A stretch of DNA of 64,000 nucleotides, taken from the NCBI RefSeq assembly GCF_020745735.1, contig NC_083421.1, forward strand, positions 38,679,001 through 38,743,000, in the 5' to 3' direction. The first letter of the stretch is position 1. The number at the start of each line of letters is the position of its first letter. Under the pieces are notes generated by a model, which did not search any database, was not told the DNA's origin, and was given only the letters and a program-made list of their open reading frames with translations. Below are positions 217-64,000 of this stretch, in pieces. Made by a program: the position numbers and the translations under genes. This DNA comes from Hemiscyllium ocellatum (taxonomy: Eukaryota).

Positions 217-631
217 GGTTAGAATGGATGAGGGGATCAGAGAAATTAAGGAGTCAGTATCTCAATAATGAGATCAAATACAGGCCAGAGAAAAGGGCAG
301 AGGTGGAGGGATGTATTGGAGATGGATGGAAGTATCTATGGAGGCAGCCAGAATTCCTGTCCAAAGAGGTAGGCATGGAGGCAAAGGCAATGGAAGAATA
401 GCTCAATTTCACATCATGCACAATATTCAATGATGTGGGGACATATTGGGACAAAACCAGATCTTTTGTTGAGCGAGATTATTCAGCATCAGGGAAGAGG
501 AGATCAGTGGTATAGTGAATATATCGCAAGCTTAGGAATTAGACTAAGAGATGGATTTAGAGAGAAAGAAAATTGGGAGGTGGTGGGGGGATATCCAGAG
601 GGTCATCAGTATCTGTGAAGTGTTAGAGGTT

Positions 632-1113
632 GTGTTCCTTTTATGAAGAGGTGACAAAGTTGTTTGATGAGGGAAGGGATGTAGTTGTCATGTACATGGA
701 CTTTAGTAAGGCATTTGATAAGATTCCCCATTGTAAGCTGATGAAGAAGGTGAAGTCGCATGGACTCCAAGGTGTTTTGGCTAGATGGCTAGAGAACAGG
801 CGACCGAGAGTAGTAGTGGAAGGGTGCTTCTCAAAAAGGAGAACTGTGACCCATGATGTTCCACAGGGATCTGTGCTTGGACCACTGTTGTTTGTGATAT
901 ATATAAATGATCTGGAGGAAGGTGTAGGTTGCCTCATTAGCAAGTTTGCAGATGACACTAAGATTGGTGGAGTAGCAGATATTGAAGGGGACTTTCAGAA
1001 AATACAGCAGATTGGAGAATTGGGCAGAGAAATGACAGATGGAGTTCAGTCCAGACAAATGCAAGGTGATACATTTTGGAAGATCCAATTCAAAAGCGAA
1101 CTGCACGGTAAAT
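632..1113 (+). mobile_element. CR1 LINE ORF2 RT fragment (left part of a CR1 interrupted by the Gypsy element)
   Basis: ORF 630..1211 has MDFSKAFDKIPH, VPQGSVLGPLLFVIYINDL and KFADDTK motifs; homology stops at ggtaaatg near 1113. Confidence 0.9.
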
Positions 1114-1330
1114 GCACCAACATGAACCCACCTGCTAATTCTGCTGCTCTTCTCACTTCTGAACTTGCTGTTCCTCCACATGAATTCTTACTATCTCCTC
1201 CAGCAGAATAATCTCTTTTAGAGCCTCATAGGCCTTATCTATTTTCGAAGCACAAACCCATAGATCAAAATAACCATGTTTAATTCTTTCAAACCCAACA
1301 TAAGTCTGATCTGGTTCCTTCTTTACTGTA
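1113..1330 (-). pseudogene. Inverted gag fragment (SCAN-like capsid domain) of Gmr1-type Gypsy retrotransposon
   Basis: Minus strand reads KKEPDQTYVGFERIKHGYFDLW..YEALKEIILLEE..VRIHVEEQQV / RRAAELAGGFMLVH, matching the pattern QTYxEF..FDxW..LxELILLEEF..AAxLAD of Gmr1 gag/SCAN. Confidence 0.7.
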
Positions 1331-3570
1331 CATTTGTCAGACATGCCAAATGGTAGGTAAGCCACAGGCAGTAATAAAACCCTTTGTTGCTGATTGCTAC
1401 ATTTGAAGAACCTTTCACATGGGTTATAATCGATTGTGTCCCCTCCCAAGAACTAAAAGTGAGAACCAGTACTTGTTAACCATAACAATGTGTCTACCAG
1501 ATTTCCGGAGGTAATTCCATTACAGAATATCAAGGCAAAAAGTGTAGTAGAGGAGTTAATAGCTTTCCTCATGATATGGGCTACCCAGAGAGATCCAGTT
1601 GGACCAAGGGTCAAATTTTGCTGCTAGGATGTTTAAGCAGGTTATGATTAGCTTGGATATGCAGAAGTTTAAATCCAGAGCACATCATCCTGAATCCTAG
1701 GGAGCTTTAGAAAGGTGGCATCAGATTTTGAAAACCATGTTGAGAGCATGCTGTCAGGATTACCCGAATGATTGGGTTAAAGGTATCCCATTGATATTGT
1801 TTGCCATTAGAGATGTCCCAAATGAATCTTATTGGTTCACTCACTTTTGAATTAATATTCGGGCAAGAAATGAGAGGTCCTTTGTGATTAATTAAAGAAA
1901 AATTGACAGGACCAAAGTAAGAGATCTCACATTTAGATTATGTATTGGAGGTAAGGGAAAGATTAAATAGAGTGGGTGAATAAGTTAAACAGCACCTAAA
2001 GAGGCCACAGCATTGAATGAAGCAGATTACAGATAAAAGCTCTGAGACTTAGATGTTTTCCTGGGGGACTAACATGTTAATACTGTTACCAATGATAGGA
2101 GGTCCCTTCAAAGCCAGGTTTAGTGTCCCTATGAGATTGAGGAAAAATTAAAACAAATTTTAAAATGAAGGAGTCCTAGAGGAGTGGGATAGGTTAGTAA
2201 ACTATCTGACTCAGGAGCATAGAATGCAGTTGAAAAATTTGTTACTGCAGTATGAGGACATATCTAAGAATCAGATGGGGAAGACTAATGCTATTATACA
2301 TGAAGCAGACGTAGGGAATACTGCTCCAATAAAACAACACCCCTGTCACTTTAACCCTTTCAAAGCCAGACAGGTCCAGATGGAGGTGGAGGCCATGCTC
2401 AGTAAGGGCCAAGCCAGAGTGAGTGGAGTTCGCCGATTGTCTTAGTTCCCAGACCTGGTGGGACTCAATGATTCTGCATGGATTATGGGAAAGTCAATGT
2501 CTTTATAAAATTGGAGTCATATCCAATTCCTAGATTGGAGGACTGTATTGAGAAAGTTGGACAAGCCAGTTATATCACCAAGTTGGATTTAATGTGTGGT
2601 TACTGGCAGGCATCTTTATCAGAGATGGTGAAAGAAATTTCTGCATTTATAACCCCAAGTGGGCTATATCAGTTTAAAGTGATGCTCTTTGGAATGAAGA
2701 ACGCACGTGCCACATTCCAAAGACTCATGAACAGTGTTGTGGCTGGGTTAACAAACTGTGCAGTCTATTTGGACAATGTACTGATCTTTAGTAAGTCCTG
2801 GAAAGATCATAAGGTACAGTTGGCAGAGCTCTTTGAATGACTACGAGAAGCAAAACTGGTGATAAAGTTGAATAAAATTGAATTCACGAAAGCAAAGGTG
2901 ACATTCTTGGAACGTAACAAAGGTCATGGAAGGTTGACCCCATGGAAAACAATGACGAAGGCCATCAAGGAATTTTCACAACCAACCTCGAAGGAAGAGG
3001 TGCTTCATTTCTTAGGACTCAACGGAACCTATTGGAGGTTTGTTCCAAATTTCAGCAGTAAAATGGCACCATTAACCAATTTGCTGAAGAAGAATGCAAA
3101 GTTTTGGTGGACAGAACAACTGCCAGGAGACATTCGACATTTGAAAGCCATATTAGCCACCAAACCCATTTTAGCTACACTAAACATTTCAAAATATTTT
3201 AAAGTTGCCATCGATGCTAGTAACATGGGAGTTGGAGCTGTACTCCTGCAGGAAGGTGAGGATGGGCTTGAACTGCCAATTGGTTACTTTTTGAAGAAGA
3301 TAAACATCCACCAGAGGAAGTACTCCATAATTGTAACGCAACTTTTGAGTTTGGTACTTGTCTCCCAACATTTCAATGTGTGTGTCACAAACAATTTGTC
3401 AGAGTCAGTTGTGTACACTGATCACAATCTACTTACATTCTTAAAATGCTTTAAAGAAGAATATGAGGCTATTTTGTTGGAGTCTTATATTGTAGACCTT
3501 TAATTGAAAAATCATATATGTTGCGAGTCATAAGAATGTAATTGCAGATGCATTATGGTAGATTTAACTG
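1331..3570 (+). mobile_element. Gmr1-like Ty3/Gypsy pol, decayed; order integrase - RT - RNase H
   Basis: 1331-2150 integrase (CQTCQMVGKP, EPFTWVIIDCV, RFPEVIPL, DQGSNF, HHPES*GALERWHQILKTML). 2224-2990 RT (YPIPRLEDCIEKVG, KLDLMCGYWQ, FGMKNARATFQRLMN, YLDNVL). To about 3570 RNase H (AIDASNMGVGAVLLQ, VYTDHNLLTFL, NVIADAL). Confidence 0.9.
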
Positions 3571-16137: not shown

Positions 16138-16461
16138 AGCGGAGGTGATAGCCCAGTGATATTATCATTGGACTGTTAGTACAGAGACCTAGGTAATGTT
16201 CTGGGGACCACAGCAGATGGTGGTATTTGCATTTAATAAAAATCTGGAATTAGAAATCCAAATGATGAACATGAATTCATTGTTGATCGTCGGAAAAGCC
16301 CCGTCGAGAAAGAAATTGACATCCTTGCTGGTCTGGCCTATGTGTGACTCCAGAGCCGCAACAACAATGGATGACTCTTAACTACTCTCTGGACAATTAC
16401 AGATAGGCAATTAAGGCTATCCTCACCCATGTTGCCCTCATCCTGTGAATGAATAAATAAA
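16138..16461 (+). mobile_element. SacSINE1/DeuSINE-like SINE
   Basis: tRNA-like head, central ggtctggcctatgtgtgactccaga...gactcttaact block, LINE-type tail catcctgtgaatgaataaa. Confidence 0.75.
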
Positions 16462-17690
16462 GGACTGAATCTTACAATTTTGGGTAAGTGTCACATTTGT
16501 CGAGTTTCATGGATGTTTTCTTTCCATGACACCCAGAAAGATTTCTTGCTCCATCTTACCAAGCTGTCCTCCATAACTGCCTACCTTCCCTAATGATGCC
16601 CCTCTTATCTGACTTGAGCTTCACTTTAACACTCTGCATCCCTGAAACAACTCAACACTGCTGGGCTATCCCAGAATTGACTGGTAAACCTGGCATCAAT
16701 ATAATCTTTAAAAGGCACTATTGGCCCAGAGCTGATCTAGGTGGTTCCTAAGATATGCACTGGACATGGCAGCTAAGGGGAAAATTGGCAGGGACAAGAA
16801 GGACCTGGTTACCGGGGCTGTGTTTAGGTGGGACATCCTCATCCTCCAGGACTAGTAGAGGAGGCTATGACAGCTGGAAGCAAGAATTGAAGTTACTGGG
16901 TAGTCACACTGATGACCAGAAGGTGATCACTGGTGGACATGATCACTGGAGTCTGACTGTTTGGAAAATCATTCACAGGTTGAAGGCATCACTGATGAGA
17001 CAATTCATTTATTGCCCATCCCTAATCATCCAGGGGGCAGTTAAATGTCAATCGCAACACTGTGGGTCTGAAGTCACATGTAGGCCACATCGACTAAGGA
17101 TGGCAGCTTTCTTCACTAAAGGACAATCGTGAACCAGATGGGTTTTTCTGACAATTGACATTGGATTCATGACCAGCATTAGGTTCATGCCAATCTAAGT
17201 CAAGGCTGATGCCCAGGTCAGTGCTGTTTCAGCTGTCTGGAGCAGTGCAAGGCATTGTGGGAAGATGGTAATCACTTTCTTTGTTATAACAGTGTAAGTG
17301 ACACCATCTTCTCAATGTGATACCTCACACTCACTCTATGCCTGCTACGGTAACCACTTCCCATCAGGGTTCATGCTCTACTACTCTCACTATTATCTGT
17401 AACATCTTCACCACTCACTGTTACACACTCCAACTTCTGACACCACTGACCCTGAATGGCCTCAGTGCTGTTTACTCAGTCACTCACTCGGGGCACCTCC
17501 CCACCTCCTCAACAGTTACAGCTGTGCCACCCACTTTCATCTCTCTAAATACTTGCTTCTCTTTCATTCTAGAAGGAAGGGAGCCCAGAATAGGACAGAA
17601 GGAGTCAAGTTGGGTGGTAGACTACCCAACATTTGTCTCCTTACCTTCTGTGAGGGGAGGATCCTGGCTGTGATGGCCCCAAGTTACTGA
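16461..17690 (+). mobile_element. PIF/Harbinger remnant: left end plus two-exon Myb/SANT-like ORF2 (decayed), with a nested DeuSINE fragment at about 16990-17190 (-)
   Basis: End ggactgaatcttac...gagtttcatg resembles 29378. ATG 16766 MAAKGKLA..RWDIL; 17200-17275 AQVSAVSAVWSSARHCGKM; donor gtaagt 17294; acceptor ttctctttcattctag 17572; exon 2 KGAQNRTEGVKLGGRLPNICLLTFCEGRIL. Confidence 0.55.
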
Positions 17691-44581: not shown

Positions 44582-46626
44582 ATATTCCTGTCAGGGTGAA
44601 AGGGAAGGCTGGAAAGTATAGGGAATGCTGGATGACTAAAGAAATTGAGGGTTTGGTTAAGAAAAAGAAGGAAGATATGTCAGGTATAGATAGGATAGAT
44701 CAAGTGAATCCTTAGAAGAGTATAAAGAAAGTAGGAGTGTACTTAAGAGGGAAATCAGGAGGGCAAAACGGGACATGAGATAGCTTTGGCAAATAGAATT
44801 AAGGAGAATACAAAGGGTTTTTAAAAATCTATTAAGGACAAAAGGGTAACTTGGGAGAGAATAGGGCCCCTCAAAGATCAGCAAGGCAGCCTTTGTGTGG
44901 AGCCACAGAAATTGGGGGAGGTACTAAATGAATATTTTGCATCAGTATTTACTGTGGAAAAGGATATGGAAGATATAGACTGTAGGGAAATAGATGGTGA
45001 CATCTTGCAAAATGTCCAGATTACAGAGGAGGAAGTGCTGGATGTCTTGAAATGGTCAAAAGTGGATAAATCCCCAGGTCCTGATCAGATGTACCTGAGA
45101 ACTCCGTGGGAAGCTAGAGAAGTGATTGCTGGGCCTCTTGCTGAGCTATTTGTATCATCGATAGTCACAGGTGAGGTGCCGGAAGACTGGAGGTTCAGAA
45201 ACGTGGTGCCACTGTTTAAGAAGGCTGGTAAAGACAACCCAGGGAACTATAGACTGGTGAGCTTGACCTCGGTGGTGGACAAGTTGTTGGAGGGAATCCT
45301 AAGGGACAGGATGTACATGTATTTGGAAAGGCAAGGGATAGTCAACATGGCTTTGTACATGGGAACTCATGTCTCACAAACTTGATTGAGTTTTTTGAAG
45401 AAGTAACAAAGAAGATTAATGAGGGCAGAGCAGTAGATGTGATCTATATGGACTTCAATAAGGCATTCAACGAGGTTCCCCATGGGAGACTGATTAGCAA
45501 GGTTAGATCTCATGGAATACAGGGAGAACTAGCCATTTGGATACAGAACTGGCTCAAAGGTAGAAGACAGAGGGTGGTGGTGGAGGGTTGTTTTTCAGAC
45601 TGGAGGTCTGTGACCAGTGGAGTGCCACAAGGATCGGTGCTGGGCCCTCTACTTTTTGTCATTTACATAAATGATTTGGATGAGAGCATAAGAGGTATAG
45701 TTAGTAAATTTGCAGATGACACCAAAATTGGAGGTGTAGTGGACAGCGAAGAGGGCTACCTCAGATTACAACAGAATCTGGACCAGATGGGCCAATGGGC
45801 TAAGAAGTGGCAGATGGAGTTTAATTCAGATAAATGTGAGGTGCTGCATTTTGGGAAAGCAAATCTTAGCAGGACTTATACACTTAATGGTAAGGTCCTA
45901 AGGATTGTTGCTGAACAAAGAGATCTTAGAGTGCAGGTTAATGGCTCCTTGAAAGTGGAGTTGCAGGTGGATAGGATAGTGAAGAAGGTGTTTGGTATGC
46001 TTTCCTTTATTGGTCAGAGTACTGAGTACAGGAGTTGGGAGGTCATGTTGCGGCTGTACAGGACATTGGTTAGGCCACTGTTGGAATATTGCGTGCAATT
46101 TTGTTGTCCTTCCTATCGGAAAGATGTTGTGAAACTTGAAAGGGTTCAGAAAAGATTTACAAGGATGTTGCCAGGGTTGGAGGATCTGAGCTACAGGGAG
46201 AGGCTGACCAGGCTGGGACTGTTTTCCCTGGGGAATCGGAGGCTGAGGGGTGACCTTATAGAGGTTTACAAAATTATGAGGTGCATGGATAGGATAAATA
46301 GACAAAGTCTTTTCCCTGGGAAGTCCAGAACTAGAGGGCATAGGTTTAGGTTGGGAGGGGAAAGATATAAAACAGACCTAAGGGGCAACTTTTTCAAGCA
46401 GAGGGTGGTACATGTATGGAATGAGCTGCCAGAGGATGTGGTGGAGGCTGGCACAATTGCAACATTTAAGAGGCATTTGGATGGGTATATGAATAGGAAG
46501 GGTTTGGAGGGATATGGGCAAGGTGCTGGCAGGTAGGACTAGATTGGGTTGGGATATCTGGTCGGTATGGACGGGTTGGATCGAAGGGTCTGTTTCCATG
46601 CTATACATCTCTATGACTCTATGATT
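44582..46626 (+). mobile_element. CR1 (HER1-type) LINE, 5'-truncated, youngest copy in window; ORF2 44897..45385 / 45382..46536 split by one frameshift
   Basis: 384-aa open RT and C-terminal region (GVPQGSVLGPLLFVIYINDL, KFADDTK) running to the end of ORF2; (ctatgact)n tail. Confidence 0.97.
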
Positions 46627-50952: not shown

Positions 50953-51309
50953 CATCCACATCCTGAATAATAAATGTAGTCTAAGGCCTAAAATATGCTT
51001 GATTAGAATTGAATCTCAAGGGTCAAAGCTCTATCTCAGTTACAAAGAATAATTATTTAAACTATTGTGCTATTTCAATAATCTAGCTCTATTTCTAAAA
51101 TATGGAGGTACTGGTGTTAGACTGGGATGGACGAGATACGATGTCACATGACAGATTATTTAAAATCACAAGCTTTTGGAGCGCTGGTCCATTGTCACCT
51201 AAACTGCCAGCCTGGCTGAGTTTCACCAGCAATTTCTGTTTTTGTTTGGCTTCTTTTTTTAATCTAGTCTACTGTTTTTGCTGCTCATAATATAATCTCA
51301 CTTACATTG

Positions 51310-52100
51310 GTGACATCCGGGTATCACTGCACAGCTTTTTGCTAAGTAGGTGCTACTTGATAGCACTGTTGATGACACCTTACAGATGATTGAGAGTAGA
51401 CTGATGGGGCGGCAACTGGCCGGGCTAGATTTGGCCTGTTTGTGTGCAGGTCATATCAGGACAATTTTCCCTTTTGCTGGGTAGAGGCCCAATATAACTG
51501 TACTGAAACAACTTGATTCAGGTGTGGTGAATTCTAGAACACAAGTCTTCAGTACAATTGTTGAAATGTTGTCAGAGTCCCATAGAGTGGACAGCATCAG
51601 GTACCTTCACTAGTTTTTTGATGTCATGTGGACTGAACTGAATGGACTGGAGACTGTTATCTGTGAGGCTGGTAAAGATGAATCATCAGCTTGGCAATTC
51701 TGGCTCAAGATTGTTTCAAATGCTTCAGGCTTATAACTTATACTGATGTCCTGCTACCCCCCACCACCCCCCCAAACATTAGGGATGGGAATTTTTGTGT
51801 AGCCTTCTCCTCCAGTTAGTTGTTTTGTTGTTTCCCTCCATTTACAACTAGATGTGACTGAATTACAGTGCTTAGATCTAATCCATTGGTTGTGGGTTCA
51901 CTTAGCCATGTTTATCATTCTGCTTGCTCTGTTTGGCATGAAAGTAGTTGTGGTCTGCATCTTGACACCTCAGTTTGGCATATGCCTAGTGCTTCTGCTC
52001 TGCCAATGGCTCACAGCGCCTCATGGGATACCCAGTCTTGAGTTGCTAGCTCTCCCCAAAATCTGTCCCATTTAGTATAAAGATAATGCCACAACATGAT
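51310..52100 (-). mobile_element. Decayed L2/CR1-group LINE ORF fragment (probably the same family as 60400-64000)
   Basis: Minus strand codes ANLARPVAAPSVYSQSSVRCHQQCYQ-like RT N-terminal relic; assignment by family resemblance only. Confidence 0.5.
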
Positions 52101-58849: not shown

Positions 58850-60150
58850 CTGTCTTCATGGAAAGAAGAGGCTGAAATTAATGTGTCAATAGAGGAAGGG
58901 TGAGTAGGGATATTACGTAAGATAATAATAGATAGAAAGAGGATTATGAAAAGGTTGACGTCAGAATCAACCAAACACCTGGTTCAGATAACATCTAAGG
59001 ATGCTGAAGGAAGCTGGAATGATTGAACCACAATCTTTCAATCATTTTTTGATAATAGGAGTCATGACATGAAATTGGATGATTGTGAAAAGCAGTGAAA
59101 CTGGTACTTTAAGTCCAGTCAGTCCAACATTAGTGGCAGAAAAAAGGCACCATTTTCATGGTTAAGACTAATTTTCATTTGGAGAAGTATGAGTTGATAA
59201 AGGAAAACTAGCACAGACATGATCAAGGCAAATCCTCTTTGAATAACCTAATTGAGTGTTTTTATAACATGTCAGAGAAGTTTCATAAAGGGTATTATTA
59301 TAGATAGGATTTCAAAACACTTTAGTAAAGTTCTGAGAAGTATTCTTACTTAGAAAATAGAAGCACACAAAATTAAGTGACAGTGGGCATTTACATAAGT
59401 AATTAGTCTAAAAGATAAAAAGGAGAGAAATGTGACAAATCAATATTTTTATTGTTGGAGAGAAATATGAAGTGATATGTCTCTGCAGCAGTATTGAGAA
59501 TATTGGTGTTTTGTTGTATATAAATGACCTGGACTTGTGTTTAAGGAGTACAAATGGGAAGCTTGTGAATCATTCAAAGAAAATAGGGACCAAGATACTT
59601 CCAGACTTCCGGACAGCATAGACAAACCAATGAAATGGACAGACATAGACCAAATGCATTTTGGTGTGGATTTACCTAAGATAGTGCCATAGCGGCAACA
59701 TTGCAAACTTTTCATTGCACTCATTCGAGCGCATGTTGCAATAAAGCAAATTCAATTCAATTCAATAGATGCGCAGTTATTAGCTTTGCTGAGAACAACA
59801 TGGAGAGACAGTGTAATCAAATAATACCTATTTTGAGGAATACAAATACAGAGGAATGTATGTGTTCGCAAGTGTTTGCAAGGTGACAGGTCAAGTAGCT
59901 AATTATTTAAGTGATAATAGGCTTTGTAAATAGGGGCATTAAATATAAAAGTGAAGGAGAGTTTTGACAGAGCAAGGAAAGATAAAACTGTTTCCACTCA
60001 TAAATGGGTCAGTCACCAGAGATCTTGGACATTTACATTATTGACAAAAGAACTCGGAGGGAAATGAGGAGGGTCTTTTTGTCTCACAAAGTGGTTTTAA
60101 ATATTTGGACTGTATTACCCAGCATGGCATAGGAGTTGGGTTCCATAATA
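58850..60150 (+). mobile_element. Very old CR1 LINE fragment
   Basis: Relics of TPGSD, PVSPTLV, DFKTL*KV, YINDLD and the 3' coding region. Confidence 0.65.
59671..59765 (+). mobile_element. 5'-truncated copy of the Rex1-tailed non-autonomous family
   Basis: tacctaagatagtgcc..caacattgcaaacttttcattgcactc..gcatgttgcaataaa(ttcaa)n. Confidence 0.6.
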
Positions 60151-60399
60151 TTCAAAACTATTCCCTAGCACCACAGAATGTGTAAGTAAGATATATTGGA
60201 GTGATCATAAGATCATAAGAAATAGGAGCAGATGTACACCTTTCAGCCAATCAATTCTACTGCATCACTCGATGCAATGATAATGACTGACCTGATTGTG
60301 GTCTTGATGTCATTTCACTGCCTGATCCCTTACCTCACTTTTCAATCAAAGAAGAGCAGCCTTGAATATATTCAATGACTCAGCCACCACTGGTCTTAC

Positions 60400-60877
60400 A
60401 TTTATTCATTCATGAGCTGCAGGTGTCTTTGGCTGAACCAGTATTTAGTGCCCATTGCTAATTGTGCTGCTGCTGGTGAGCTGCCTTTCTTTATCAGCTG
60501 CAGTCTATGTTGTGTAGGTTGAAGCACAATGCTGTTTGGAAGGGAGTTCTAATCTTTTGCCCCAGCCAGGAGGACTGACTGTGAAAGAATGGACAAGTCA
60601 GGATGCGGAGTGACTTGGAAGGGAACCTGCACAAGATGGTGTTTACATATATTTGCTGCTCTTGTCCTTCTAGATGTTAGAGATGACAGCTTTGGCCTTA
60701 GTGAGTTGGTGCTGTGCAAACTGATGCCACTATGCTCAGTACAGTGGAAGTGAATATTAAGAGGGTGCGAAATGGAGTGCTAATCCAGCGGGTTGCCTTG
60801 TGATAGATGGTGTCAAGCTATTTGAGTGGTTGTTTGGAGTTGCATACATCAAGGCAATTGTGGTATATTCCATCAAT
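60400..60877 (-). mobile_element. L2/CR1-group LINE 3' end (tail shared with the DeuSINE)
   Basis: Minus-strand end gggcactaaatactggttcagccaaagacacctgcagctcatgaatgaataaa matches the tail of the SINE at 16400-16461; long non-SINE body upstream. Confidence 0.75.
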
Positions 60878-61136
60878 GAGAAGGCAATTGTATAGTGGTG
60901 AATTAGTAATCCGAGACTCAAATAATGAAATGGGGTCCGCCACCAAGACAGATAGTGGAATTTAATTTCAATAAAATCTGCAGTTAAAAGTCTAATGATA
61001 GTTTTTACAACAATCTAGTTCAGTCAAGATCTTTAGGGAAGGAAAACTGCTGTTCTTACCTGGTGTGGCCCACACGTGACTTCAGACCCACAGCAGTAGT
61101 CATTTAGTTACATAAAGTACTGGAAGGCCTCTAAAG
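60878..61136 (+). mobile_element. tRNA/Deu-SINE-like head lacking a SINE 3' tail; probable 5' UTR of the LINE continuing at 62945
   Basis: Aligns with 16138-16365 (cagatagtggaatttaatttcaataaaatctg; cttacctggtgtggcccacacgtgacttcagacccacagca), then diverges from the SINE tail. Confidence 0.65.
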
Positions 61137-62944
61137 CTATGTAAGAATCCTACTCATTGACTACAGTTCAGCCTTCAACACTATCACCCCCTCGAGACTG
61201 ATTACTAAGCTTAGTGATCTCGGATTAAGCACCACTCTCTGCAACTGGATCCTTAATTTCCTGACCCACAGGCCTCAATCAGTGAAGATTGGGGACAATA
61301 TTTCATCCTCACTAACACTCCACATTGGAGCCCTCCAGAGGTACACACTCAGCCCTTTACTGTACTTACTGTATAACTATGACTGCGTCACCAAATACCA
61401 GACTAATGCCATTTACAAGTTTGCTGATGACACCACCGTAGTTGGTCGAATCTCAGGTGGTGATGAAACAGACTACAGACGGAAGACCTAGAAAAATGAT
61501 GCACTGAGAACAGTCTAGCTCTCAATGCAGGCAAAACCAAGGAACGCGTTATTGACTTTCAGCGGGATGTTACTCACGGCCTCCCCTACACATTAACAGC
61601 ACAGAGGTGGAACGAGTAGAGAGTGTCAAGGTCCTGGGAGTGGTCATCAAAACAAACTTCCTTGGACTCTTCATGTGGACGCACTGTTTTCAAAGGCCCA
61701 ACAACGTCTCTTCTGTCTCAGGCAGCTGAGGAAATTTGGCATGATGACGAATACCTTTGCCAACTTTTATAGGTGCTCCATCGAGAGCATTCTGCCTGGA
61801 TGTATCAGTACCTGGTATGGTAACTATACCATTCAAGATCGGAGACGGTTACAGAGAGTGGTGAACTCAGCTCAGATAATCACAAAGGCCAACCTCCTAT
61901 CTATAGAAACTATCTACCAGGCCCGCTGTCAAGGAAAGGCAGCCTGCATTCTCAAATATATACCCACCCTGGCAATGTTTTTCCCCAATCTCCACTGTTA
62001 GGGAGAAGGTACAGAAGCCTGAACACATGCACCAGCTGGTTTCAAAACAGTTCCTACTCTACTGTTGTTAGAATACTGAATGGACTCACAAATTCTCAGC
62101 ATCTGCCTGTACCTGTGGTTTTTCTTTTTTTTTGCTGCTGTTTACCTACTACAGAAGAACCTCGATTATCCAAACTAGATGGGCGGGCACTACTTCATAC
62201 AGATAATTAATTATTTGGTTAATTGATTTCTTGTGGGGCTCGGAATTTTCTGTGACGTTTGCTTCCCGTTCAGGAGCCTAGGCAAAAGTACACTACGTGT
62301 GGGACCCTGACCTTTGTCTGCTCCCACCCCACCCCAACCCCATCCGCTCCCACCCCACCTCCCACCTGCCCCCAGCCCTGTCCAATACCACTCCTGTCTG
62401 TCCCCCGCCGGGCCCCAACCCCACAGCCATGTCCCCTGTCCATCCCCACTCACCGTGGGGCAGCCAGACTGGATTGCCTTTGTGGGGTAAGTCTCCAAAT
62501 AGTGTGAACACACACACACACACACACACACACCTTTTTGATAGGTTCCACCTCTGCCCTGTATAGGACAATGTTGGAGAGATTATCCAGGGAAGGGTGG
62601 TTTAGGGTTCACCCCTGTGTAGAACTCCAGGGAAAGTGTCGGGGGAGAGAGAGGGCAGGATGTCAGTCATTTAGAGACAATGTCTGGTCTGTCCAGGACT
62701 GTTCGTTTTTAATCATTGTACCTATAAACAAAGACACGATCAGGGTTGAAATACCTCGTTGACATAATGTTTCTATCGGGACTTTGAGATCGCCTTTGGA
62801 TAATCCGATATTTGAATAATTGATATTCGGATAAACGAGGTTCCTCTGTATTTACTTACATATGCTATTTAACTATGTGATCTGCCTGTATTGCACACGT
62901 GACAATAAATTAAATTAAATTAAATTAGATTCAATTCAATTCAA
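61137..62944 (+). mobile_element. Rex1/Babar LINE, 5'-truncated RT and 3' UTR
   Basis: [52 protein letters not shown]; 3' end cacgtgacaataaa(ttaaa/ttcaa)n. Confidence 0.92.
62152..62848. mobile_element. Tigger/pogo-like MITE (697 bp) in the Rex1 3' UTR; (CA)n at about 62508-62532
   Basis: TA + cagaagaacctcgattatccaaa ... ttcggataaacgaggttcctctg + TA. Confidence 0.85.
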
Positions 62945-64000
62945 AGATGAATGAAACTAGATGGGCCACCTGGCATCAGGTAAGGCACTGCAAACGACAT
63001 TGACAAACTCAGATCCGTCAACCCTACAAAGTCCTCCTTGCCAATTTGGGAGCTGGTGCCGAAATTGAGAGAGCTGTCTCACAAACTAGCCAAGCAACAA
63101 CCTGGTGTGGTTCCACTCACAGAATTATACCTAATACACAAAGTCCCATCACTGTCCCTGAAAATGCCCTGTCCCACTCGTAAGTGCTAGAGGAAGGAAT
63201 TGCCCTTGGAGTTCTTAATATTGACTCCAGACCACATCAGATCATACACTGGCAAGATTACATGTACCATCTACCCACTCAGTTGATGAATCAGTGCTCT
63301 TTCATGGTGAACAACACTTTGCGAAGTACTGAGGGTGGCAAGGGCCCAGGATGTGTTCTGTTCAATGTCCATCATCAAGGGTGATTCAGCAACTACTGAC
63401 TGAGCTGGTCAAGTCCTGAAGGACATAGGAGGTCTGTTGCAGGTTCTGAGAGAGCCAGCATGAGACAAAAACATACGTGACCTCATGCTCACTAATCTGC
63501 CTGCCATAGCTACATCAGATGTAGTGAATGTGTAAGAATGACTGCTGCACAGTCCTTGTGCAAGCAAGGTGCTAACTGGGATAAACCGTGAACAGATCCA
63601 GCAGCCATGAGATGCTGGGTGTCATCAGCAGCAGCAAAATCGTACTCCACACTATATGCAACTTCATGGCTCATCATAAACTCCACTCTACCATCACATC
63701 AAGCTGGGAGATCAACTCTGGTTCAATGAAAAATGCAGGGGTTTATTCCAGAAGCAGCATTCAAAAGAGGCATCAACCTGGTGAAGATGCATAATAGGAT
63801 TACTTGTGTAGCAAGCAGCTTAAACAGCAAGTGATAGACATGGATAAGTGATCCAACAACCAACAGATTGAATTAAACCTTTACATATCTAGCTATGAAT
63901 GATGGTGGGCAGTTAAACAACCCACAGAGGAGAATGGTCTGCACACATCTCCATCCTCGATGATGGAGTGCCCAGTAAAAGATAAGGCCAAAGCAACAGA
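62945..64000 (+). mobile_element. L2/CR1-group LINE 5' portion, APE endonuclease pseudogene (runs off window)
   Basis: KVLLAN/IWELVPKLRELSHKLAKQQPGVVPLTELYL (NxxGL..PDIVxLTE), FNVHHQ, QVLREPA*DKNIRDLMLTN (PTR..LDL). Confidence 0.8.

Follow-up and report, generated by a model that had tools for sequence, protein, structure and literature searches.

A decayed nested retroelement locus of Hemiscyllium ocellatum suggests a shark LINE family with a SINE-like 5' end

The last part of a 64,000-nucleotide (nt) stretch of the Hemiscyllium ocellatum contig NC_083421.1 (the window; positions below are those of the window) is a pile of nested retroelement insertions (60395-64000). In this pile, a sequence resembling the 5' portion of a short interspersed element (SINE) stands upstream of the endonuclease-coding start of a long interspersed element (LINE), and a Rex1-like LINE lies between the two. 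An initial annotation had read the outer parts as one element, a LINE with a tRNA-derived head, and the local SINE as the same element with its interior deleted. The question raised by the locus is whether the SINE-like head is the proper 5' end of a LINE family or an ordinary SINE that happens to lie beside a LINE. Alignments within the window, together with gene models from a second shark species, suggest that the first answer is probably correct, that is, that elasmobranchs have a family of SINE-headed LINEs of the CR1/L2-like type with a single open reading frame (ORF) and an apurinic endonuclease-type (APE) domain, and that the locus is an old, dead and 5'-complete copy of it.

When the Rex1-like insertion is left out, the order of head and then endonuclease was borne out, with the head at 60878-61095 and the LINE at 62945-64000, both on the plus strand. 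The head consists of a tRNA-related 5' part and a conserved central core. The reference copy for comparison was a free SINE on the plus strand at 16138-16470, which has head, core and, from 16393, a LINE-type tail; a second copy of the local SINE on the minus strand (16969-17121) is 5'-truncated and retains core and tail. In a local alignment of 60903-61095 with 16175-16363, 125 of 199 columns (63%) were identical, and the score was 35 compared to 10.3 ± 1.2 in 300 shuffles (z about 20). Identity to the minus-strand fragment near 17121 was higher (61 of 81 positions, 75%). The start of the head (approximately 60877) coincides with the first bases of the free SINE, and the best-conserved part of the head is the core at 61031-61095.

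Contigs from four shark runs, representing three organisms, were also mapped to 60000-64000; the contigs are of short length, and their depth does not give copy number. The core was high-copy in all four runs. Hundreds of contigs from three shark species matched the core only and then continued into standard SINE sequence on both sides, leaving loose ends at 61031 and 61095. The alignments to the free SINE also showed that the head has no SINE tail, as had been annotated from the start, and because this LINE-derived 3' tail is missing the head is not a free SINE copy. The head had been drawn as far as 61136. SINE homology holds up to 61095, but the remaining 41 nt (61096-61136, plus strand), which fill the space up to the Rex1 insertion site, are not assignable to the SINE; this linker is possibly the decayed and shortened remnant of the family's 5' untranslated region (UTR).

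The element that separates the two parts was confirmed as a nested, later insertion, the 3' part of a 5'-truncated Rex1-like LINE at 61137-62944 on the plus strand, by its reverse transcriptase match, by loose contig ends and by a target duplication of five matches in six. The translation of 61138-61488 matched RVT_1 (E 3.3e-07, 30.7 bits, above the cutoff), and that of 61675-62001 matched Pfam ALKBH8_N, a family commonly matched by the C-termini of Rex1 elements. Since approximately 100 contigs per run continue upstream past 61135 with other sequence, the copy is truncated at 61135 at its 5' end; it terminates in a short-repeat tail at 62944. The flanking sequences ctaaag and tcaaag agree in five of six bases, which makes a plausible target duplication.

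Downstream of this insertion lies the decayed 5' coding part of the LINE (62945-64000), with a start codon at 62951, APE homology from about 63030 and many stops and frameshifts. Its reading frame crosses the end of the window at 64000, so that the 3' part lies outside. Three-frame translation past 62944 gave pieces such as SSLPIWELVPKLRELSHKLAKQQPGVVPLTE between stops and frameshifts, and the pieces by themselves had no match in Pfam. Positions 62983-63552 aligned with L001, a 687-nt shark-derived contig of an ENA metagenome assembly whose first base lies past the start codon; identity was 76% once the 109 gap columns are excluded. The reading frame of L001 matched Exo_endo_phos_2 (E 1.2e-10, above the cutoff) and, weakly, Exo_endo_phos. 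The predicted N-terminal domain of the LINE is an endonuclease of the APE type, identified through this contig.

In a tblastn comparison with the shark protein fragments P0002-P0010, P0007 and P0010, which begin with MKPDG(P/L)PGID, aligned from the ATG at 62951, where the window reads MKLDGPPG. As these two whale-shark fragments align from that codon, it is the likely start codon of the family. The initial annotation had placed the start of the ORF near 63030, approximately 340 nt from the start of the head. The start moves 79 nt upstream, and the distance from the first base of the head to the ATG, without 61137-62944, is about 265 nt, made up of the SINE homology and the 41-nt linker. What had been said about ORF1 stands, since a distance of approximately 265 nt leaves no space for one. 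The head (approximately 75% identical to the better SINE copy, near 17121) and the LINE part (76% to L001) are similarly decayed, which fits a single insertion and is no proof of one.

The start region itself (62948-62958) reads atgaatgaaac and thereby mimics atgaatgaa, the 3' terminal motif that SINE and LINE have in common. The atgaatgaa at 62948 was considered as a remnant SINE tail and rejected, as the whale-shark copies put the motif at the LINE start codon. Those copies imply aaatgaaac at this place, and the form found in the window looks like a 4-nt slip and not a remnant of a tail.

A tentative clade for the LINE comes from relatives. In the whale-shark fragments P0013 and P0014, pieces of the APE family are fused to reverse transcriptase-like ones (RVT_1 in P0013, E 4.8e-4, below the cutoff). 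These APE-family fragments and the published tail partner of such SINEs, L2-2_CM or a CR1-4_DR-like element, point to a CR1/L2-like LINE, its reverse transcriptase lying outside the window.

Copies at other loci were approached at the protein level. A search of a representative protein set with the 68-residue N-terminal piece from the window gave three matches, of which P0002 was the sole true relative. P0003 is a tandem-repeat protein whose match was spurious, and P0001 was set aside on its match pattern alone (15 stretches, 34% identity), which resembles that of P0003. A word search with the same 68-residue piece gave no candidates; one that started from P0002 gave twelve further fragments. 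All six fragments that were looked up, P0005, P0009 and P0011 among them, proved to be EukProt gene models from Rhincodon typus, the whale shark; a further one, P0006, derives from the ENA contig.

Three of the fragments, namely P0005, P0009 and P0011, extend upstream of the start codon. Residues 32-52 of P0011 match the core of the head (61036-61098) and residues 77-114 match the N-terminus of the APE domain (63044-63169), and the two matches are collinear. Residues 36-60 of the same model match the free SINE fragment at 17105-17031. Where the homology in the window head ends, the model goes on: a codon comparison of residues 53-62 with the SINE-body consensus that follows position 61095 found seven of the ten identical and the other three one to two base changes off. 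P0009 (MAQQATQLYQSLQSLKE-MKPGG...) and P0011 (...PLSCIN...) read one inferred 18-base stretch in two frames, and P0009 and P0005 have the same 5' UTR, which leads to the start codon and, beyond it, the endonuclease. Chained together, the whale-shark models thus lead from the SINE core through a common UTR segment to the ATG and the APE domain in independent copies. Because the sequence between core and ATG is common to P0005, P0009 and P0011, the joint is shared and was not formed anew in each copy. The layout of head and endonuclease is therefore not confined to the Hemiscyllium locus, as judged at the protein level from a few gene models.

Several further searches added nothing. A word search with the part of P0011 that reads the SINE returned only P0011 itself, a search of solved structures with P0006 gave nothing useful, and protein or DNA pattern scans of metagenome, GTDB genome and viral contigs found nothing.

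These results indicate that a SINE-like 5' end is probably a real feature of the family. Several points limit that reading or its extension to the SINE. The evidence across copies consists of a handful of whale-shark gene-model fragments compared at the protein level, and P0011 is approximately 60 nt shorter than the window between its two anchors, owing to a deletion or to a predicted intron. The linker at 61096-61136 had no significant similarity either to the continuation of the SINE body or to 16364-16400, as 995 and 371 of 1000 shuffles, respectively, scored as high. The 18-mer GCCACTCAGTTGTATCAA, deduced from the two frames in which P0009 and P0011 overlap, was found nowhere in the window. 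The joint from 61136 to 62945 was not among the best 15 joints listed (591 further joints followed), which neither supports nor refutes it. The 3' end of the LINE lies beyond 64000, and no flanking target duplication can be read. Finally, the 3' fragment near 60400 that provides the comparison with the SINE tail may be of another family than the LINE at 62945 and beyond.

The linker deserves a separate word. An alignment of 61096-61136 to the SINE body that had been made by eye failed the shuffle test and was withdrawn. Either this copy has lost approximately 40 nt and decayed in addition, or the linker is foreign. Decayed, interrupted, cut by the end of the window and holding a linker that can be assigned to neither side, the locus is a poor exemplar of the family it would represent.

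The best explanation that we can offer for the whole is as follows. The family would have a 5' UTR homologous to the local SINE of tRNA/Deu type, both to its head and to its body, and the first nucleotide of the full-length LINE RNA would be that of the SINE. By recognising the common 3' tail, the LINE protein would mobilise LINE and SINE alike. The local SINE subfamily may have come from such a LINE through internal deletion, and in an earlier step an older Deu-SINE probably provided the LINE itself with its head and Deu body.

The step of internal deletion can be examined in the window. The 5' block of the free SINE matches the SINE-body consensus, or LINE-head block, up to about 16392, and its 3' block matches a LINE 3' end from 16393. 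That 3' end is a separate, 5'-truncated LINE 3' UTR fragment on the minus strand (60395-60877), whose tail ends in ...catgaatgaataaat; the LINE-type 3' tail is also written ...atgaatgaataaa. Roughly the terminal 66 nt of the fragment can be aligned with the tails of both local SINE copies (16138-16470 and the one near 17121), and contigs of high copy number map within it at 60536-60803. The sequence at 60400 had been identified in the initial annotation as a LINE 3' end carrying the SINE tail; this proved right, with the correction that it lies on the minus strand and is a separate insertion. At 16392/16393 the two blocks meet without any intervening base, so that the free SINE consists of a LINE 5' end and a LINE 3' end, possibly of one family, and nothing else; decayed copies blur such breakpoints by a few bases. 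P0011 shows in addition that the LINE head reaches through the 5' block of the SINE. Internal deletion is favoured because abutting blocks need one deletion and no coincidence. On balance, we lean toward descent of the local SINE subfamily from a head-bearing LINE by internal deletion, and the view that the SINE equals LINE head plus LINE tail holds as to the abutting blocks and falls short as to a single LINE family for both.

The strongest competitor keeps the first half of this account and drops the second: the LINE would have gained its 5' UTR or promoter by taking up a SINE head and body, and the local SINEs would belong to an older and independent lineage. Deu-SINEs headed by tRNA or 5S sequence are found in animals ranging from bivalves to mammals (PMC3747384, PMC11481361). 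For Callorhinchus, the part reported to be common to the SINE and L2-2_CM is the tail alone (PMC5499810), and a Repbase screen found 5' parts of LINEs in SINE bodies for RTE and Vingi only (PMC5786205). Capture without any later deletion would, on the other hand, require the captured block to end exactly at the boundary between SINE body and LINE tail (16392/16393). We consider it possible and worth keeping in view, if rather unlikely as the full account; for the earlier history it is compatible with the explanation preferred here. Because Deu-SINEs are far more widespread than the known range of the LINE (PMC5499810, PMC3747384, PMC11481361), the LINE probably took its head and Deu from an older SINE. 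Given the same distribution, the idea in the initial annotation that Deu originated in the LINE is unsupported and, in that form, unlikely.

A local accident would do without any family link. An ordinary SINE would lie beside, or would hold, a LINE truncated just before its start codon, or the LINE would simply have come to lie next to the Rex1 tail. The region is indeed a nest of insertions, the homology of the LINE begins exactly at the Rex1 boundary, the linker can be given to neither element, and the copy in the window is without the 18-mer of the whale-shark 5' UTR. Such an accident nevertheless requires the same orientation, a SINE without its tail and a LINE cut within approximately 6 nt of its ATG, all together. 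The 5/6 duplication around Rex1 argues that its flanks were formerly contiguous, and head and LINE are equally old. Moreover, the order recurs in P0011, from another species, and the UTR belongs to the LINE in P0009 and P0005. An accident of this kind is quite improbable. Least probable are one-off chimeric retrocopies, recurrent dead-end fusions without heritability made when the LINE enzyme jumps from the 5' end of LINE RNA to SINE RNA, for although template-switch chimeras of LINE and small RNA are well documented (PMC13174262) and a SINE this abundant is a likely template, independent jumps predict varied breakpoints, whereas P0005, P0009 and P0011 (three copies only) agree from core to ATG, and a head that starts at the first base of the SINE and has no tail has the shape of a transcribed unit.

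Given the SINE-headed LINE as the preferred reading, the type of its head and the polymerase that would transcribe it can be considered together. No tRNA was found in the head or in the free SINE, as ARAGORN reported zero genes and Rfam gave no tRNA match even at E<=10. By eye, the head has an A-box-like tatagtgg, and its B-box region is decayed and partly deleted. As no tRNA is detectable in these decayed copies, the tRNA label is drawn from the literature on this family of SINEs. The core is presumably a Deu domain, a name taken from the initial annotation.

The sense strand has no run of four or more T residues either in the LINE of the window (62945-64000, 1,056 nt; chance of none 0.09) or in positions 1-687 of L001 (chance of none 0.28), and runs of A are present in both (six and four, respectively). 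As evidence this is weak and, alone, not significant; the stretches also overlap. An RNA polymerase III (Pol III) transcript of 3-4 kb would be unusual. With no tRNA detectable, the B box decayed and the absence of T runs weak evidence, the proposed Pol III-type head found no support; transcription of the LINE by Pol III is improbable, and RNA polymerase II acting from a promoter inside the SINE-derived UTR would be the more likely option. A wider scenario appears equally unlikely, in which a shark LINE of CR1/L2 type, possibly transcribed by Pol III from a tRNA-derived head in common with the SINE, has repeatedly spawned DeuSINE subfamilies by internal deletion, and in which Deu would be a LINE 5' UTR kept for expression of the LINE, at least in cartilaginous fish.

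Other elements complete the picture of the window. Within the 3' UTR of the Rex1-like copy lies a non-autonomous DNA transposon of 701 bp (62150-62850) with terminal inverted repeats of 25 nt that match at 22 of 25 positions (TACAGAAGAACCTCG...) and a target duplication of 9 bp (TTTACCTAC / TTTACTTAC). Inside it are a low-complexity tract rich in C and a run of (CA)n near 62510-62535, and contigs from other Rex1 copies without the transposon join 62148 straight to 62849/62861. The LINE fragment at 51300-51710 (minus strand) is heavily decayed, with approximately 37% protein identity to P0013/P0014 and no recognisable 5' end; it is a distant relative of the LINE at 62945-64000. A 5'-truncated LINE of another family on the plus strand (44897-46536), far less decayed than the LINE at 62945-64000, has an ORF of 162 residues followed by one of 384 residues with RVT_1 (E 3.9e-23). 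At 630-3503, also on the plus strand, RVT_1 (630-1211) and RT_RNaseH_2 / RT_RNaseH (2859-3503) are probably the pol remains of a long terminal repeat retrotransposon.

Among known systems, the nearest are the DeuSINEs of the SacSINE1/LmeSINE1 type, which the free SINE at 16138 resembles in its three-part layout and in having its tail in common with a LINE 3' end. For SINEs of the SacSINE1 type, homology to the L2-2_CM LINE is reported in the tail only (Luchetti et al. 2017, PMC5499810), and a CR1-4_DR-like partner is listed for SacSINE1 (Ohshima 2013, PMC3747384). The difference is that here head and body also stand at the 5' end of a LINE, whereas the published homology is limited to the tail.

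A second likeness is to bipartite non-autonomous LINEs and to SINE bodies taken from LINEs (PMC5786205), in which the short element combines the 5' end with the 3' end of an autonomous LINE or the middle of a SINE is a LINE 5' region. In the Repbase survey of Kojima 2018, the one systematic screen, RTE and Vingi were the only clades whose LINE 5' regions turned up in SINE bodies, and a source of the conserved bodies was stated not to have been found (PMC5786205). In the RTE and Vingi cases a small-RNA head was added upstream of the LINE 5' part, whereas here a CR1/L2-like LINE itself bears a tRNA-type head, and the body in question is a conserved SINE domain whose origin was left open there. 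A CR1/L2 parent would be a new clade for this phenomenon.

Chimeras of U6 or tRNA with L1 and the co-option of promoters by L1 (PMC13174262) likewise place a small Pol III RNA, or another foreign 5' end, upstream of a LINE. Those chimeras are mostly one-off and 5'-truncated with variable joints; in contrast, the joint described here is common to copies and species and lies before the start of a complete ORF.

The LINEs UnaL2 of eel and ZfL2-2 of zebrafish are single-ORF members of the L2 clade with stringent recognition of the 3' tail and partner SINEs that have this tail in common. The LINE described here would resemble them in having one ORF with APE and, beyond the window, a predicted reverse transcriptase, in having no ORF1 and in having a tail-sharing SINE partner. 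We know of no report that these LINEs have a 5' UTR in common with their SINEs. No paper describing a SINE-headed LINE was found, nor were the exact motif strings, within a coverage of the literature that was incomplete.

The origin and function of SINE middle domains such as Deu, conserved across phyla, are an old open question. Repeat annotators will break LINEs of the present kind into a 'SINE' plus a '5'-truncated LINE'. The direction of descent (from breakpoints and trees), the function of the domain as promoter or UTR and the polymerase involved are all testable in shark genomes. A CR1/L2-type LINE whose 5' UTR is an entire SINE head plus Deu body, which is probably what the locus and its whale-shark counterparts represent, would tie this conserved domain to an autonomous element.

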